DNA of 64,000 bases. It comes from Diadema antillarum (taxonomy: Eukaryota). The position numbers and the translations under genes are program-made. The stretch lies in assembly GCF_040938485.1 (NCBI RefSeq), contig NW_027272607.1:186001-250000 (forward strand), given 5' to 3'. Every line of letters begins with the position of its first letter. Position 1 is the stretch's first letter. Shown here piece by piece: positions 8,386 to 36,900 of the stretch. The notes below the pieces were generated by a model. The model was not told the DNA's origin, did no database searches, and worked only from the letters and a program-made list of their open reading frames with translations.

Positions 8386-8785
8386 CTTTGGTGGCAAACA
8401 ACCATAGAAAATGGCACCAGTTTAAAACGTAACTCATCTGCTATTTTTCTCTCTGATTTGACCAAACTTCCAGCTCTTCTTCCTTCTTCCTTGCATTGTT
8501 ATTTCTCTTGCATCCTCTCTTTAAATATTTTTTTCTTTCTCCATACTGTGCACATATTCACAACACTTTTCAGAAGACTTGTAATTTCCAAAAGCCAAAT
8601 CTGATGATAAAAATCTGTGTTTGCCTTTCCTTTTCAGATTCCTCATGAAAGGCATATCAGGCCAGCTCTTTCATTACATCAGTAAGTCTTTAAAAATGAC
8701 AGGCTTTGACTTGACCCACAATGCAATGATATATTTCTGTTTTTACAAGTTAGTCATCTTTTCATCTTTTGATATCAAATATTAA

Positions 8786-9111
8786 AGGGTGAGTACAGTT
8801 CTGGTTGAGGTGAGGATTTAGCTTTTAACGTTTTGCTTGATGAAAATCGGTTTTGAGATGGCTGAGATATCCCAAAACAAGGCGAAACAAAGAGATCCTA
8901 ATAAAAGGCGTGGCCTCTCGCCTTTTATTATTATCATTTTTTTTTGTGTGTGTGCATATCTCAGCCATTTGAAAACCAATTTTCATCAAATAAACATTGA
9001 ATCCTTCTTAAAATTACATGCTCTTTCCTATTTCATAAGAGATTTCTCATTATCTCACTTATCAATGTTATAAACCTGAATCCCCACCTTAACCAGTACT
9101 GTACAGTCTCT
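8786..9111. mobile_element. TTAA-flanked MITE family A (Kolobok-like AGGG...CCCT/CTCT termini)
   Basis: TTAA duplication, imperfect TIRs, internal palindrome; homologous to 25147-25960 and 28362-28751. Confidence 0.75.
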
Positions 9112-9334
9112 TTAATGTAAAAGTGAGCATTTATTAATGTGAAGGTAAAATAGGCGAGACATACATATGAAGGCGTATCCTCTTTCTTGAATAATGAACA
9201 TCTCAAAAATAAAATTTGATGGATGTTGAGAGGGTTTGCAAACAGAGAGCATCTATTTAAAACACAGCACTGCTCTGAGTTGAAAAACAAACAAACAAAC
9301 AAACAAACGACAAACAATGCAGAACGAAACCTAC

Positions 9335-19507: not shown

Positions 19508-19917
19508 CTAGACCGAGGCAGTGGCCGGAGCGGTACCCGATGGAGATGCGGTGGGTTTCACGTCGGATGTTGCAGCGGCGGGAAGACTACTGTCTTCTTC
19601 AGATCTGTCGGGCGGCACATCGATGACTTGGTGGTCTTGTCTTCCCTCTCCTTCTCCTGCTCCTCCTCCCTCTCCTCCTTCTCCTTCTCCTCCTTCTCCT
19701 CCTCCTCCTCCTTCTCCTCCTCCTTCTCCTTCTCCTTCTCCTTCCCCTTCTCCAACTCGCCCTCCCCCTTCTCCTTCTCCAACTTCTTCTTCCTCTCCAA
19801 CTTTCTCTCGTCCTCCTCCTGCCCTCGTACAGCAGGTGGGGAACCACGAGGGACACCATGATGCCTGGCAGGTGGGGCACCAAGATGGCCAGATGGGATT
19901 TGGAGGGGGAAATTCTC
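19508..19917 (-). CDS. Predicted terminal exon of the membrane protein (EFPPPNPIWPSWCPTCQASWCPSWFPTCCTR, (GE)n tract, S/T/A/P tail, TAG)
   Basis: Acceptor ccatttccctctcgtttcaaacag; phase matches the phase-1 donor at 21100. The internal codon repeats differ mainly at synonymous third positions in this frame. Confidence 0.65.
19640..19822. repeat. (CTC/CTT)n tract, read on the minus strand as Gly/Glu codons
   Basis: Read directly. Confidence 0.9.
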
Positions 19918-21099
19918 CTGTTTGAAACGAGAGGGAAATGGAAAGGTGATCGCAGATCGCGACAACTTTCAGAAGTAATTATATCACGAGCAAATCACTA
20001 GACGCAACAGCCGATTAAGCCTTAGCTTCTTGTTCAGTGTTACTGTTGTGGTTTCTTCAATTTAAAGATACAATAAAAGACGCCTAAAATTATTTGAATG
20101 AAACTGTCATGTTGACCCTGCATGGGATTTTTGGTTTAGATTACCGCTTCTTTAATCCACAGTGACATTTGATCTATATTACAATATCAAGTTACATAGT
20201 TAATAGAATCTGAGACGAGACTGATACAAAGTTTTGTGTATACATAGTGACTGTGTCGCAATTACCACAAATGGTGGATAGATTTTGATAAATGGTAATG
20301 ATCAACTGCATACTGGCACAAAAATACTCTCTAGTAGGTCTCATCAAACAAGGTCAAGGTCTCCTTAACTTCCTCTTGAAATGACCATTTCAACAAATGG
20401 CATGAACTAAAATCATACGGGATGTGTGTAACATTCTAACAAATTGCCTGCTATAATAGTGTTATAAATGACAAATGAAATATATTATTTCCCAAACAGT
20501 TATGAGTGAAAATAAAATGTTATATTAGAAATCCGGTTAAGCTACAAAGTCGCCCAAACATGACTTTTCTTACAAGTGGTCTCGCAATAATAGATCCTAT
20601 GGAGTTTTTAATATCGTTATTATTTTAAAGTCCATAACTTTTATGATGAATTGTCAAAGAAAATTGCTTCCACCGTTTACTTTAAGCAAAATAATTGTTA
20701 TTTGTTAATAGCGACAAGGGTATACTAGATGACGAATATTTTATCGAGTGTTCACAACCTGTCCGAGATGGCACAGTGAATATGAGTGTTGTCATTTTGA
20801 CGTTATACCAAAATCTGTGACGTCAACAGCTAAGTGTATAATTTTGAGTAAACAATCGATCCTAACTAACTTTGGTTGGATAAAACTGTTCTCTTTGCAT
20901 GAGAGGGCTGCCTTCGTAAAACATGATGTATTCCACTTTCAAAATAATATTTGTCTTGGTTTTTTGTTTTGTTTGATTGTATGTTTGTTTGTTTGTTTGT
21001 TTGTTTGTTTGTTTTTTGTAAACGCTGAGTTATTGTAGGGATTATTTATTATAAAGCAGCGTTGGTATTAATCCACGATATATACTAGGAGCAGTATAC

Positions 21100-22903
21100 C
21101 TGTTTGGGCGTATTGACGGAGATCCTCCTCGAGTGAGAAGAGCCTGTCCTGGTAGCGATTTTTATCCTTCCCTGTCGAAGAACAAGGGTTGCTCTTGAAC
21201 TTCCCCGTCCCAGCCAGTAGCAATGACCCAAGTGTGATGATGTACTCGGCGACCTTGGGGATGTTCGTTTCCTTGTCGATGATAATAACGAACACAGCTA
21301 TCACGGCAAGGATGACAAGAATAATGACAAGATGCCTGAGGGTCCTGAATAAGTGGAGAATGAGCGGGAGGCGTTTCCTCATGATATCTCTCAGGAGGGA
21401 GGACCGGATGAAAAACTTTGTCTGTGGAGGACCATGAGTTCTGAAGATTCTGTGCTCTGGACCTCCGCCGTCGATTCCCTTCCCGACCGAGTACACCCGG
21501 TTGAAGAGCTGCTGGTAGTGATCGAAAAACGAGACGACGGACACCACGCATGCAACGACGGCAACAGCAATATTGATCCAGGCAGGGTAGATGTGATTGA
21601 GATTTATGGCGATGCCGGCGAGGGTGAGGATTACAATTTCCACGAGCAGTATTACGCTGGCTGAGAAGCGGAAGAAGCATAGAAGGGCTACCGGTATGTA
21701 GTACTTCAATTTCTTTTTATTAACCCGCAGCTCGTCGTACAGATCTAAGTCAAAGTCGACATCGTATCTAAAGACGTAGAACAAGAAGAGCCCCATTCCC
21801 ATGAGGTACATCAGATTAGCCAGCACATAATCAAGGACCACTTCCCGTGTCGAGTAGTCCTGCCCGAGTTGACTCCTGCGAAAGTTGTATTCGTCCTTCA
21901 TCGAAACGGCGTGACACACGTAGGCAATGACATACACCACCAGCGGCAAGGCCAAGACCACTCCCCAATAGACGGCACGAACTATTTGGTGGTACTTTTG
22001 TTGGCGCCACCTCCAGAAGAGAATCAGAGGTGGGATGAAGCCAATCCTCAAAATGTTTAGGTACGGATCATTCTCATTTTGCTGTATCGGCTCTGGGTCT
22101 ACATCGTCTATCTCGGTCCAGCCATTCTTTTGTCTCGATCTTATAAATATCAGGAGGACGATGATCCACACAATTGCCATACCTCCATACGTCAACCCAA
22201 ACGACAAAGGTACGATGGAACATGTAACTTCTTTTGTGAAGCAATCATAGTAAAAACTCGACTGCACTTCAAAAAGACTGTAACCAGGAATTAGGGACCC
22301 TCTGAATGAAGGTTGCGCTGTGCTCTTTTCCTTGCAAAGTAGGTCATTTTCAGAGTTAGGAAGTGACCCACCGGCTGCCTCAACGGTCATCCGAACATTC
22401 CGTATGATGTCTGATAGAGCTACAAATAGACAGGCCTCCATGGTGTCGTTTTGCCCCACCCCTAATGGGCTCTCTCCCAAGTGAACTGTTACTCGCCGAT
22501 TGCCTGGTGACAGCGTGTTAAGCGATAATGGCTCGTAATTGTAGGGAAACGTGAGAAGTGTTTCACCCCTCGTTCCCAAAGACCACACCCACATGTTACG
22601 CTCCATCATGTCTGCATTTGAATCAGCAGTGATGTTGATTCTCAGCATGACTGTGTAATTCCCGGTTAACTCTTCCACAAGCGCGGTAGTGGTAGCATTG
22701 ACGAAAGAGTCTGGAATTTGGCACCGAACATCGGTTATGTTCGGCAAGGAACGAGAAACGCGACTGACGGGAGCTTGATTGGGAGTTTCCCTCTTAGTAT
22801 GGCTGAACAGCACCATGGTGGAGAGAGTGAGAAACGTGGTCAATAAAAGGGCCGCCATCACAAGGCGCCTCGAGACCGAGACCTGTGTCCGAATCGCCGG
22901 CAT
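21100..22903 (-). CDS. Orphan multi-pass membrane glycoprotein, large exon (signal/anchor, about 200-aa ectodomain, about 7-8 TM segments)
   Basis: Long GC-rich ORF. The track's start at 22996 runs through a 3' splice site (pyrimidine tract ...tattgcag, exon begins 22953); first in-frame ATG is 22903. Hydrophobic segments read by eye; five N-x-T sequons. Donor CAG|GTATAC at 21100/21099; the unspliced form would stop at 21068. Confidence 0.85.
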
Positions 22904-31122: not shown

Positions 31123-33566
31123 CGACTGTAGGAAACCTTCTACTACCTACTCGTGTACGGTATGAACAACACCGTGATGGGTATTCGAGATGGTCTCCAT
31201 TCATTGTTTATGGTTGCAGCCGCAGCCTATCCCTTGGCTATGCTATGCTACACTAGTACTTCTGTAATTTATGTCCCATAATCCATCTAATAGAATATGA
31301 ATAGCAGACTAATTACCTTATTACATGTACCCCATTACGGCATGCCATTAGATCTAGTTGTTCCCTTTTATTTATTACCGGATCTATCGTAGCCGTAGGG
31401 CTAACCTAGGCCTACTGGAAAAATGCAGAGATTGCTCTGCATTTGCTTGTATGTAGGGTATACGACTCGAGTTTAGAGAGATAGAGAGCTCTTCTCTGCA
31501 GCTGATTTTCCAGGTCAAACAGTGTACAGTACACTGTAGGCCTACTGTATCTCTCTCTTCTACACTATTTATCGCATCCTCCTCGCCACATTGTAATTTG
31601 TAGTTCTGTGTAACGGTTAGTTGGTTGGGTTGACTTTTTGTGTTTGTGTATGTGCAGTGACCGTGTGTTGTGCATGGTACTGATTTGCTGATAGTGATAT
31701 GGGTATCTGTACTAGTATGATGGGGGGTTGTGTTTCCGGACACTTAAGTTTGCGCGTGAAAACTTAAACGTTTACCCATTTTACATAGAATATGCACCCT
31801 TCTTTACCTCAAAAGACTTGATATAGACTCCTCATATACGTGTACTAGACAACATACTCTGAAAACGGCGTGAGAATTCCTGGGTGCGTCATTTTCATTA
31901 CAGACACACTTACAATACGTGTCCGGCCCCACCTGTCCGATCCCACGACGCTTGGTCATACTAGTGTAATAATACATAGAGTAACATGCCCAAGTTTGGT
32001 AACACACTTTGAAACAGTATTTGTGCTATGGTTCCTAGATGAAGTATTGAGTGTGTCTTTTGGAACATTGTGTGTCAATATAATAACATTCTAAATGCAT
32101 ATTTAAGATATACGAATTACATAAATTATACAAATTACATTATACATAAGAAATTTTGAAAAAAAAAATGTTTTGTATGTTACCTTCTTTGATGCCATGA
32201 TTGGGACACCTCACCCTTGATTGGTACACACAGATGATTTGTATGTGCTGTAGTACAACTTCATTCATTTGCACACATCAACATTATCACCCATAAGAAT
32301 CATGTACCTGTGTACCAATCATGGCACAGCGCTGTCTGGAGGCAAGGCCGACAGTAATATGTACATCTATGTAAATACCTCTATGAGCTCACTAGTCATT
32401 AGTAATCTGGCTGCTGTTGACTGAACATCATGACCAACTTCACTTGCACAAAAGATGACTATATATATATATTCACCATTCAGTGCACAACAACTGGTAA
32501 ACAGCGGTCCAAAATGAGGACTGCATCTTAGCTCACCTGCTAATTTCCAGCTAGAAATCTAGTTTGGCAAGAGGTCATGAAGATCAAAAACTTTTTGTAA
32601 AAAATTTAGCTTTACTGGTCTTTGTTGCCCTGTTTACTGCTTATTTTCAGAGGTAAGAGGCTACATCTTTCAAACATACATACAAGGCTAAGAATTATTT
32701 ATTAGCTTCAGTGTGTCAAAGAATACTAGGCTGCAAACAATACTAGGCTGTACCAATCATGGAGCTGTACCAATCATGGGCTCGTTACTCAGTGCACTGC
32801 ACTGATATTTTACGAGTATGATAAATGATATTCTCTGTTTATCAAGTCGACAAGATGTCTAACATAGAGTAAACCAACCAGAATTTGGCCACTTACAATG
32901 TATTTAAGACTGAAGCTTTTCTGCAACATTTATTCAACTAAATTAATACCTACAAAATTATTTATCTACAACAGTGTACATACGATGTAGGTCCTATGTT
33001 GAATATTTGAAATTTCTTTTATCTCAATTTTGATTTTGTTAAGTACATCCTAGAATTTCAGAAAATCCCCAATTTATACCAGTACACATCATCTGTAAAT
33101 CGCTATGATAACCAACCAGAATCCATCCGCCCTGGCCATAATTCAGAACGGGTGCTTCAGTGTATGCACATTCAATGTCAATGCACGTACAGGGCCGCTG
33201 AAAAAAATGTGCGTACACAGGTAGGCCTACACATCTGATGGTATTAACCAATACTCTCAACATGACTGTACAGTGTAAAAAAAATTGAAAGCATTCTTGA
33301 TTCTTCGAGTTCTAATGTAGATGGCTAGATCATGCAGATTCTGTGTGTTAAAACTTGGCAATAGAGCTAAATGCAGTTTCATACTCTCCATGAATAAAAA
33401 TGCGTCATGATATTGACTGTATTTAAACACTAGTGTAATGTTTGATAGATTCATCACTACTAAATCCTTTGTTTTATGATAAACCCTTTTACTTTTTTTT
33501 TTGGGGGGGGTAGAAAGTAGATTAACTGGCAGAAAAAAAAATAGCAATATACCTAAACTGCCTTAA

Positions 33567-33923
33567 AGGGGAAGGCTAGTAACTGATCAGTGGGAATCAG
33601 TGGAAATGCTGGGAGATGATTGTTCCAATCCTTATGGGATTCATTCAAGAGTTCATTGTATATCTATTGTTGTGTGAAAATGATTTGCTTCAGAATGGTC
33701 TCATATTCAAGTAATGTGCAGTTTAATGCTTCCAGGTTAGCGTCCCTGGTCAGTGACGGAGCATTAATCTGCACATTACTTGAATATGAGACCGTTCTGA
33801 AGCAAATCATTTTCACACAACAATAGACATACAATGAACTCTTGAATGAATCCCATAAGGATTGGAACAATCATCTCCCAGCATTTCCACTGATTCCCAT
33901 TGATCAGTTACTAGCCTTCCCCT
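33567..33923. mobile_element. 357-bp foldback MITE (166-bp arms), TTAA-flanked
   Basis: TTAA|AGGGGAAGG...CCTTCCCCT|TTAA; five mismatches counted between the arms; 25-bp spacer. Confidence 0.9.
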
Positions 33924-36900
33924 TTAAGAAACTCTGATTGTGTTCTGCTCACAATACATTGCCTGTTGACAAATTTCACTCACACTGACGCTGACAACAG
34001 GAAACCATACACACTGTTGAAAAGTGTAGGACATGTGATGATGGTTAAAGTTAGCAACTGCGGTGGTAGGTGTACAAACTTAAAGTGGCGTTTTGGTAAT
34101 TTTTTTTTTTTAAATCTCCCATTGCTGCTTTCCCATGAAGCAGAGAATAGCAGTGCAGCTGTGAAGTACAACCTTTAATACAACTTATACGTGTATAACT
34201 GTACATCTCTTTTTGTCTCTCCTGTGTCATGTATTTGTGAATGCATCATCAACAGCTCAATACTGTGTTTGGTATTAAACGGCATGTAGTTTTCACTGTA
34301 CTTCTCCATCAAAGTTTTCTCAGAGATATTTTGGAGTCAGACAGTGAAATGATTTTGTGTTTAAAGTCTTACTTTATTGCTTTCTTGGTTTTTTTTTAGT
34401 ATTTCACTAGTGTGCAAGGACATTTTTTCTCATTCTTTTACGTGCTTCAATAGAAAGCTGTTATAAATAACAATTGAATTGACCAATATTGTTCACTTTA
34501 TTTCTCACTATCAAAGTATTCTTGTAGGACATACATTTGGGTTAAATCCTATATCCAGATGCATTTTTGACATTTCAGCAATCCTGTCCATTCAAAAAAA
34601 TAAATTATAGATCTAGATACAATGTATGACATGGCAGAACATGATTCTTGCATCTCATCTATGTAGTGGTAAGTGCTATTGAAGTTCAAACAGATTTAAT
34701 ACCGTGAAGTAAGCTGGAAAAATACATTACAGCCCCTGAGTGAGGTATGAAAAAAAAAATGGTCGCTACAATGTACATAAAAACTAAATAAATCTTGTAA
34801 ATCTTATACAGCTGTACATAATAGATTTGATAAGTTCAAAGGAAATTTTTCTAAAAACACAAACTGACAACATGTCCTACCATATCCTGTCATCAGTGCA
34901 CACAGGGCAAGTGACTTTGAATGTTCAGTGTGAGTAGAAAACGGTGGAGTTTCTTCAGCTATTGCCATTTTTGTACCATAATACCTTCCCTTTGTCAATA
35001 CAGTCTCTTGATTTAAAAAAAAAAAGAAGGATTGGGTGGTGACATACGGTGTATCGATGTATCTTGATGAGTAGGAAACTGCATTTGCACCCTTTATCCT
35101 ACTCTTGTTTCTATAAACAGTTTTTAGATCTAGAATGTCGAGATCTAACACACTGTAAAGCACTGTGCACTTGTTCATCAGAAAATTTGTCACTATCAGG
35201 TTGTAGATGGCATTTCTGCAGGAAATCTACATAAATATCAATTGCTCCATATTTCCCTTTTAGTCAGTTCTCTGCTGTAATAGGTGAATTTCAATTTGAA
35301 AATCAAATGAAGTAATTCAAGGCATTCTATTGCTATACTGTAGTAGCTTCCATCTTTAATAAATGTGGAAAATGTAAAATTAGTAAATACAAATAATGTA
35401 CATTACAGAGGGCATTAGTAAGAATTATGCACTTGATAGTACTAGTAACCTTGGAACAGTCTGAACATACATTGTACAAGAGGATGCCGAGTATGTTTTG
35501 GACTGTCCAGAGCTACAGAGGGTGGGTCATTCCGGCTATAAGTAATGTGCATTATTTGTTTTATAGAAGGCTGACATGCTTTGAACTTTATCATTTGATA
35601 ATGAAACTTAAACTCTTTACATGTACGTACATGTATGTACCACGCTCGACATTCGCAAGCGCAACTGAGTCAACGACATGCCTAGTTCGCATATATATTC
35701 TGTGCAAACGTACAATTAAAGCTGCATGTAATTGTGAAACCACCAAAGATTAAACCTAATATACTAGTATGCATTATCAATGCTGTACATATTAGACACA
35801 GATTCATTTTTTATTGATCCCATTTTACGTGTGTTTGTGTGTGTTGTGGTTTTTTTTTAAATATGCTGCTGCTGAAGAGAACAATCATGTAAAGGAAGCC
35901 AAGCATGTACATGTATTGCACTGTACTACTGGGTATGCTGTACAGTGTATGTATTTTGCAAATTTTGTGAGTCTGGTGCTATTTGCGAATTTAACAACAC
36001 GTGAAAATATTAATTCTGATTCTGACATGAATGCGACAAGCATGCGTCCATTTCTGCATTCGTTACTGTACTCCATGACTGCAAATTTAAATTGTTGCCA
36101 AGTCCCATTTCACAAAAAATTTGAGTCACCAAATATACATTGTATAGCTTACATGTTATGCAGTACATGTACAATGTGCATTGTATTTAATACAAGGGTC
36201 ACCCTGCAATAGTAAAGAGGTCTATTGATCTAGATGTGATTTCCATTAGCATGTGCTGTTCCTACCTAAGCAGCAAAAATGGAATGAGGTGAATACCAAA
36301 AGTACAACAGTGTATGTACAGTACCAAGTATACCCTCTATAGTGAATATAACGTGATGCAATCATACAGTGTAGCTGTCGTTCAAACTTCTCAGTTAGTG
36401 ATGTCAGAAGTGATAGTACTAGTTCTTTCCACTCGTGTGTTTTTCAAACAGTGAGAGAGGAAGCAAAGGATCCTGAATCCACAACAAAACATGGAAACAT
36501 ACTGTACACGACATAACAAGGGGACTTTTTGCTCTGTTTCATACACTGTACTCATTACATATACATGGAAGATCCCTTTGTGGTGTACAAAAAGTACCAG
36601 TACAATAGTGTACATTGTAAGTCATTTTTGTTTCAGTGGTACACAATTGAGCCGCAGCAGTGTTTGACAGCAAAATTGAAATTGAGTTTCATGCAAATGG
36701 GGCCTAGGGTCTGTACAACAGAAAAAGAAATAAAAATCTAAATAAAACCTAACTGGTACTGAAATTCACAGACATAAATCATGTACGATGTCCACTTTGC
36801 GCATTCCCTAAATGTGTGCTTACTGAAGACTTAAATATAGTTTATAGTGTATGTATACTGGTACCATATGTAAGTGTACATGTGGCATTATACAAGATTG

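Follow-up and report, generated by a model that had tools for sequence, protein, structure and literature searches.

Gene organization in the window

The window analyzed here is the whole stretch of 64,000 nt from Diadema antillarum, and all positions given below refer to it. Its minus strand is highly likely to carry a two-exon gene interrupted by a phase-1 intron, with 19508-19917 as the true terminal coding exon (Table 1). Comparison with related genes makes it very probable that this stretch is the real last coding exon of an uncharacterized sea-urchin membrane-protein gene. The first ATG of exon 1 is at 22903 and its homologous part closes with LEEDLRQYAQT. The donor base at 21100 is the first base of a codon, and the frame opened by the acceptor at 19918 continues for 136 codons up to the TAG at 19508-19510. 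The donor GTATAC is without the usual G at position +5. The GC content changed in steps along the locus, being 0.46-0.54 in exon 1, 0.29-0.36 in the intron, 0.52-0.59 in 19508-19917 and 0.31-0.41 beyond it.

The exon 2 frame was absent from the list of open reading frames because it lacks its own start codon, and the list contained only the two other minus-strand frames over the tract. This agrees with a first-pass annotation of the window, made from the sequence alone, which had pointed out the missing frame. The same annotation had assigned a CAG/GTATAC donor of matching phase to 21100 and an acceptor to 19918. Both were located: the exon ends at 21100 in phase 1, and a pyrimidine-rich tract followed by CAG precedes exon 2. 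The translation from 19915 reads EFPPPNPIW, PSWCPTC, QASWC, PSWFPTC and C, followed by a Gly/Glu tract of ~58 aa and a tail rich in S, T, A and P. It reproduces the order described earlier (PIW-PSWCPTC-QASWC-PSWFPTC-C, acidic linker, S/T/A/P tail), in which the linker had been given as about 55 aa. Exons 1 and 2 were translated, searched and aligned as separate pieces, and the searches and folds of this gene reported below concern single exons. The two-exon model would correct the ORF-based reading, in which the protein ends 136 residues early and 10 intron-encoded residues replace the real tail.

Table 1. Features of the predicted two-exon gene and of its terminal exon (window positions).
Feature	Position	Strand	Description and evidence
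Exon 1, coding part	21100-22903	-	601 codons plus the first base of a Gly codon; ORF; aligns from Met1 with urchin homologues
Exon 1 product (predicted): N-terminal signal anchor, glycosylated ectodomain, multi-helix membrane core	21100-22903	-	AF2 model, mean pLDDT 75.7
Splice donor CAG/GTATAC	21094-21102	-	Last exon base 21100, phase 1; same position in 13 other genome copies, L. pictus and two ENA contigs
Intron	19918-21099	-	1182 nt; GC 0.29-0.36; (CAAA)n array at 20950-21019 (TRF); AATAAA at 21045-21050
Polypyrimidine tract and CAG acceptor	19918-19945	-	17/22 pyrimidines before the AG; paralogues have the same AG/GA acceptor, then [EK][YF]P
Exon 2 (very likely the last coding exon)	19508-19917	-	Finishes the Gly codon, 135 further codons, TAG at 19508-19510; GC 0.52-0.59; first residues and layout homologous to urchin tails
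Cys/Trp/Pro module	19829-19915	-	29 aa with 5 Cys, 4 Trp and 8 Pro, CC at its end; translation; identical in the second haplotype; Cys-rich counterparts in L026, L027, P0001 and P0002
Gly/Glu low-complexity spacer	19643-19819	-	GGA/GAA-type microsatellites; TRF, repeat search and haplotype comparison
Distal polar tail rich in S/T/A/P	19511-19642	-	Ends in ASV; translation; polar or acidic disordered tails of relatives end in V or L
Candidate poly(A) signal AATAAA	19187-19192	-	First after the stop codon, 316 nt downstream; consensus match only

The exon junction in related genes

A word search with exon 1 retrieved three sea-urchin proteins with 35-36% identity, 91-99% coverage and E values of 1e-97 to 3e-104. 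P0001 from Lytechinus pictus (XP_054756453.1, LOC129262369) and P0002 from Strongylocentrotus purpuratus (XP_011664681.1, LOC100888318) are related to the exon 1 product at these values over the whole body. In both proteins YAQTGEFP is uninterrupted in one chain, while in the window YAQT stands directly before the donor and (G)EFP directly after the acceptor. Past this point P0001 and P0002 continue with a block of Cys, Trp and hydrophobic residues that ends in CC, and then with an acidic or polar disordered tail. The Diadema copy differs from them in the duplicated Pro-rich unit of the PSWCPTC type and in the Gly/Glu insert.

The intron was also found in relatives. The L. pictus gene encoding P0003, the third of the urchin proteins (locus L001), is interrupted as ACAG/GTAATG ... 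CCTAG/GC, at the identical codon and in the identical phase. In the Diadema genome, CAG/GT follows YA.T in 13/13 other copies with a locatable site, a set that includes the second haplotype on contig C963 and several near-duplicate pairs. Five paralogues have a downstream AG/GA acceptor followed by an exon starting with [EK][YF]P. One of their tails is that of the RefSeq model P0012 (XP_071503406.1, Diadema antillarum), whose gene sits on contig C677, and another is nearly equal to P0007 (XP_072176098.1, Diadema setosum). A scan of the paralogues for Cys-rich second exons matched only L022, and a relaxed scan found Cys absent from most tails. For the L014/L015/L016/L025 group, L019, L020 and L023, a second exon was not found within 8 kb.

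Thirty-two relatives came out of a profile search against 1.84 billion representatives, and every named one was from an echinoderm (Asterias, Amphiura, Diadema, Lytechinus and Strongylocentrotus). The nearest two, P0004 (40% identity) and P0005 (36%), come from separate contigs of a single ENA assembly. On each contig a GT donor interrupts the same codon and the intron measures ~380-410 nt, after which an exon starting G TFP encodes 9 or 6 Cys in its first 45 residues and a polar tail, with the stop after 91 or 77 residues. A phase-1 intron in the Gly codon after YA.T, with the next exon starting [EKT][FY]P, is therefore shared by the window, L. pictus, the Diadema paralogues and the ENA contigs.

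The homologous continuation in the relatives and the conserved intron together identify the frame at 19508-19917 as a homologue of a conserved terminal exon. The spliced C-terminal tail proposed in the first-pass annotation, with 21100 joined to 19917, is thus strongly supported by the homologues, the L. pictus intron and the genome copies. That annotation had also considered that orthologs might keep the alternative frame or no frame at all. The urchin homologues follow the exon 2 frame, with GEFP, the Cys/Trp block and a polar tail.

If no splicing occurred here, the protein would end at the TAA at 21068 (GILLLVYIVD), and 19508-19917 would be an untranslated or non-genic microsatellite with a frame that is open by accident. 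There is no stop in any of the three frames across the purine-rich tract, so the openness of the exon 2 frame carries no weight. The sub-consensus donor and an AATAAA 18 nt after the unspliced stop would also fit this reading. However, the homologous proteins continue as the exon 2 frame does, the position and phase of the intron are conserved, and the peptides read through past the donor have nothing in common among the paralogues. A single AATAAA is not beyond chance in 150 nt of AT-rich intron sequence, and the signal is present in only 2/12 other introns, which belong to a near-identical pair. We consider the absence of splicing very improbable.

A milder alternative, compatible with the spliced gene, is that the spliced mRNA is accompanied by a tail-less isoform, produced by intron retention or by polyadenylation within the intron. 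The weak GTATAC donor is kept in the second haplotype, and in both haplotypes the stop lies 10 codons into the intron with the AATAAA following 18 nt later. The read-through peptide is not conserved, however, and a poly(A) signal within the first 150 nt of the intron is common to only one other near-identical pair of copies. Such an isoform seems unlikely on this comparison, though less so than a gene that is never spliced.

Protein family and predicted fold

The gene can be assigned with good confidence, from similarity along the full-length membrane body, to a multi-copy family of polytopic membrane glycoproteins that has so far been found only in echinoderms. Conserved blocks include CFFRFSA..LLVEI and FFD.YQ.LF. 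In its own genome exon 1 matched at least 15 further family loci with 31-34% identity, which are clustered (contigs C1630, C21, C2, C247 and C677; loci L013-L025); since the assembly holds both haplotypes, such counts of paralogues include allelic pairs, probably C21/C2 and C247/C677. Two family loci, possibly pseudogenes, contain an in-frame TAG, and in one of them there is a TGA as well. Members at a greater distance (23-26% identity) are located on C1725, C45, C41, C727 and C1025.

The exon 1 protein was absent from the matches in libraries of 5.8 billion clusters and 1.84 billion representatives, in which the same assembly is represented by RefSeq models of paralogues. The gene may be unannotated, or it may merely be absent from both libraries. 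Pfam gave no match above threshold for either exon or for six relatives, and none at E<=1 for the exon 2 peptide; P0004 carries the tag "DUF8415 (weak)" in a precomputed table. A feature search of a protein atlas yielded no usable match, and when the tail region of P0001 served as the query of a word search, the three urchin proteins described above were the sole matches. A literature search by locus names and DUF found no paper naming these proteins or the family.

AF2 was run on exon 1 with 25 family sequences and gave a model with pTM 0.72. In it, an N-terminal membrane helix is followed by an ectodomain of mixed alpha/beta structure (residues ~34-229) and then by seven more long helices. 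The ectodomain after TM1 contains five N-glycosylation sequons and five Cys. No PDB entry matched the exon 1 model in Foldseek at E<=0.001, and the weak rows for TRP channels had TM scores of ~0.1. In a wide VIA-align search the highest Z was 6.6, for a piece of three helices, which is under the noise level of helical bundles, and a shape search of the ESM atlas with the same model gave TM <= 0.26. None of these structural comparisons produced a convincing relative.

The comparison defines a C-terminal layout for the family, consisting of a conserved helix, the phase-1 intron, a start with [EKT][FY]P and an optional Cys cluster. This layout exists already in predicted proteins of two other urchins, which are annotated as uncharacterized. 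New are the assignment of the exon to the Diadema gene, the in-frame duplication of the PSWCPTC-type block, and the Gly/Glu expansion with its haplotype difference. None of these results would be surprising to a specialist.

Composition of the tail

The repeat units quoted in the first-pass annotation (CCA TCT TGG..., GCA TCA TGG TGT and CCC TCG TGG...) were located at 19868-19888, 19853-19864 and 19832-19852. The two long units form a 24-nt direct repeat with 83% identity and an in-frame spacing of 36 nt, and the Cys/Trp/Pro module arose by in-frame duplication. Codon-level selection on this repeat, which had been claimed from its silent third positions, was not borne out: 4/6 differences among the repeat units are silent third-position changes (binomial P=0.10). 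The excess of such changes in the internal repeat is no more than suggestive.

In the group of relatives with GxFP, five tails bear Cys, with 3, 4, 5, 6 and 9 Cys in the first 45 tail residues and a spacing that is not conserved. A CC doublet beside W, F or L recurs in the Cys-bearing tails of the close relatives. The tails of P0003, P0007 and P0012 contain 0 Cys, so the Cys module is optional and not essential in the family.

The Gly/Glu tract is a fast-changing spacer of variable length. TRF detected period-6 and period-18 arrays at 19643-19753 and a further period-18 array at 19768-19803. The region of P0001 that matches the distal tail was modelled by AF2 with a pLDDT of 33-45.

The C-termini of the closest group are hydrophobic, being ASV (19511-19519), PDV, SSV, SSL and PAV in the window product, L026, L027, P0001 and P0003. 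The exception is P0002 with ARR, whose distal part resembles an artefact of the model. A C-terminal PDZ ligand was rejected because the end is A-S-V and position -2 is neither S nor T. The hydrophobic last residue could be a terminal Val/Leu sorting signal, or it could be due to chance.

Comparison of the two haplotypes

A second collinear copy of the whole region was found on contig C963, with 99% identity over exon 1 and 89-99% in the flanks. It is most simply read as the other haplotype. C963:271571-303242 is collinear with window positions 5000-36000 in inverted orientation (89-99% identity), and the assembly appears to hold both haplotypes here.

The haplotypes differ in exon 1 by 5 synonymous and 4 non-synonymous changes. 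In the intron they are separated by 12 substitutions and by indels of 11 and 2 nt, neither length being divisible by three; the longer indel falls within the (CAAA)n array at 20950-21019. In exon 2 there are 2 synonymous and 9 non-synonymous changes, together with one in-frame indel of 6 nt. All of the exon 2 differences are downstream of the Cys/Trp block, the block itself is identical in both haplotypes, and the frame is kept. In the Gly/Glu tract the differences are the 6-nt indel and mostly replacements between G and E.

Because 9/11 of the exon 2 differences change the protein and all lie outside the Cys/Trp block, the Gly/Glu tract is without visible purifying selection. The frame being kept across the 6-nt slip is not evidence of selection either, since the repeat has a period of 6. 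The 6-nt in-frame indel and the period-6 and period-18 arrays bear out the earlier proposal of a microsatellite-encoded spacer with variable length. The tract provides a clean example of haplotype variation within a single animal in a coding microsatellite.

Membrane topology of the tail

Charges around the last two predicted helices were summed over 13 family members. There are 48 K+R and 17 D+E before TM7, 8 K+R and 18 D+E in the 7-aa loop between TM7 and TM8, and 56 K+R and 16 D+E after TM8. This positive-inside signature of a TM7-TM8 helical hairpin places the C-terminus on the cytoplasmic side. The tail is probably cytoplasmic on this pattern, in agreement with the earlier annotation, which had called it "probably cytoplasmic". 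The side of the membrane is not certain because TM8 was modelled at low confidence (pLDDT ~50-60) and has a modest mean hydropathy of 1.19 in the window copy.

The same low confidence and modest hydropathy would fit a tail that is real and extracellular or luminal, in which a weak TM8 does not span the membrane and the cysteines form disulfides. However, the charge pattern of the 13 relatives fits the hairpin with a cytoplasmic C-terminus, and an odd and variable number of Cys (3-9) is a poor fit for a disulfide-bonded fold. An extracellular tail therefore seems quite improbable.

In an AF2 model of the natural full-length P0001, a C-terminal helix at residues 603-627 (pLDDT 94-96) stops exactly at the exon boundary. 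The Cys/Trp block forms a short weak helix in this model, with disorder beyond it. The Cys block lies ~35-65 residues past TM8 and is not juxtamembrane. In the window, N-P-C-S follows right after the last hydrophobic helix (~21182-21193). P-C-S or P-C-L is kept at this place in the Diadema copies and in the ENA relatives P0004 and P0011, and the camarodont urchin proteins are without it. This may be a second candidate acylation site, nearer to the membrane.

Possible function of the cysteine-rich block

We propose that the tail follows the TM7-TM8 hairpin and the C-terminal helix, which ends at the exon boundary, and that it is cytoplasmic. The Cys/Trp/Pro block with its CC end would be an interfacial segment whose cysteines are S-acylated. 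Once acylated, the block would anchor the C-terminal helix by its end to the inner leaflet of the membrane, which might affect the sorting or the conformation of the protein. The Gly/Glu tract would be a fast-evolving, length-polymorphic and disordered acidic spacer derived from a coding microsatellite, and not a sequence-specific element.

According to a review of S-acylated channels (PMC4035745), no consensus motif exists for S-acylation, which is promoted by proximity to membranes and to hydrophobic or basic residues. The tails show the corresponding properties, with Cys amid hydrophobic or basic residues, variable spacing and CC doublets (criterion from PMC4035745). S-acylation is favoured over a metal or disulfide site because the Cys spacing is unconserved and the CC doublet recurs beside W, F or L. 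We rate an S-acylated block that pins the helix end to the inner leaflet as an even call.

Alternatively, the tail could be real and its cysteines could bind metal or act as a redox centre instead of carrying fatty acids. W-C-P-T-C occurs once in the module and resembles the thioredoxin-type W-C-x-x-C active site in its letters, the dense Cys resemble a metallothionein, and 9 Cys fall among the first 45 tail residues of the relative L026. However, the exon 2 peptide has no Pfam match at E<=1 and no thioredoxin or other domain, and the module is short (~30 aa) and contains 8 prolines. The CxxC is broken in the second repeat unit, where Phe takes the place of the first Cys, and the motif is kept in none of the relatives. 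Conserved number and spacing of ligand Cys, as expected of metal or redox sites, were not seen in the five relatives, which have 3, 4, 5, 6 and 9 Cys. The block is also rich in Trp and Phe, which to our knowledge is unlike metallothioneins. Metal binding or redox activity therefore appears improbable, about as much so as an extracellular tail.

S-acylation of the block would have counterparts in known systems. In rhodopsin-type receptors, helix 8 is followed by a palmitoylated CC. Viral glycoprotein endodomains, such as those of coronavirus S and influenza HA, have Cys clusters on the cytoplasmic side without fixed spacing, often followed by an acidic tail (PMC8227752). The clusters of both the receptors and the viral proteins are within a few residues of the membrane helix, whereas the Diadema block is placed well beyond the last helix, after a separate C-terminal helix. 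A closer parallel in layout is the BK channel, in which a dicysteine in the alternatively spliced STREX insert is acylated and tethers the C-terminus to the membrane (PMC4035745). In both cases a module on an exon of its own belongs to the cytoplasmic C-terminal region of a polytopic membrane protein. The proteins are unrelated, and STREX is an internal cassette after a polybasic stretch, whereas the Diadema module forms a terminal exon in which the Cys lie among Trp and Pro, and its acylation is inferred.

A broader and more doubtful possibility is that these proteins form an echinoderm-restricted class of eight-helix glycoproteins in which a C-terminal "cysteine string" has been repeatedly rebuilt by in-frame duplication (3-9 Cys). 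Together with the Diadema microsatellite spacer, which is length-polymorphic in one individual, such a string might act as a fast-evolving, tunable lipid tether or sorting signal.

Repeats elsewhere in the window

Two dispersed repeats were detected outside the gene. At 8780-9147 there is a repeat of ~280-340 nt, with copies of 88-92% identity on more than 35 contigs and a reversed match of ~73%. At 33558-33934 there is an element of ~370 nt with more than 40 copies on many contigs (98-99% identity), each of which also matches in reverse at ~93%. The latter is therefore near-palindromic, and it is very young, in the manner of a MITE or foldback element.
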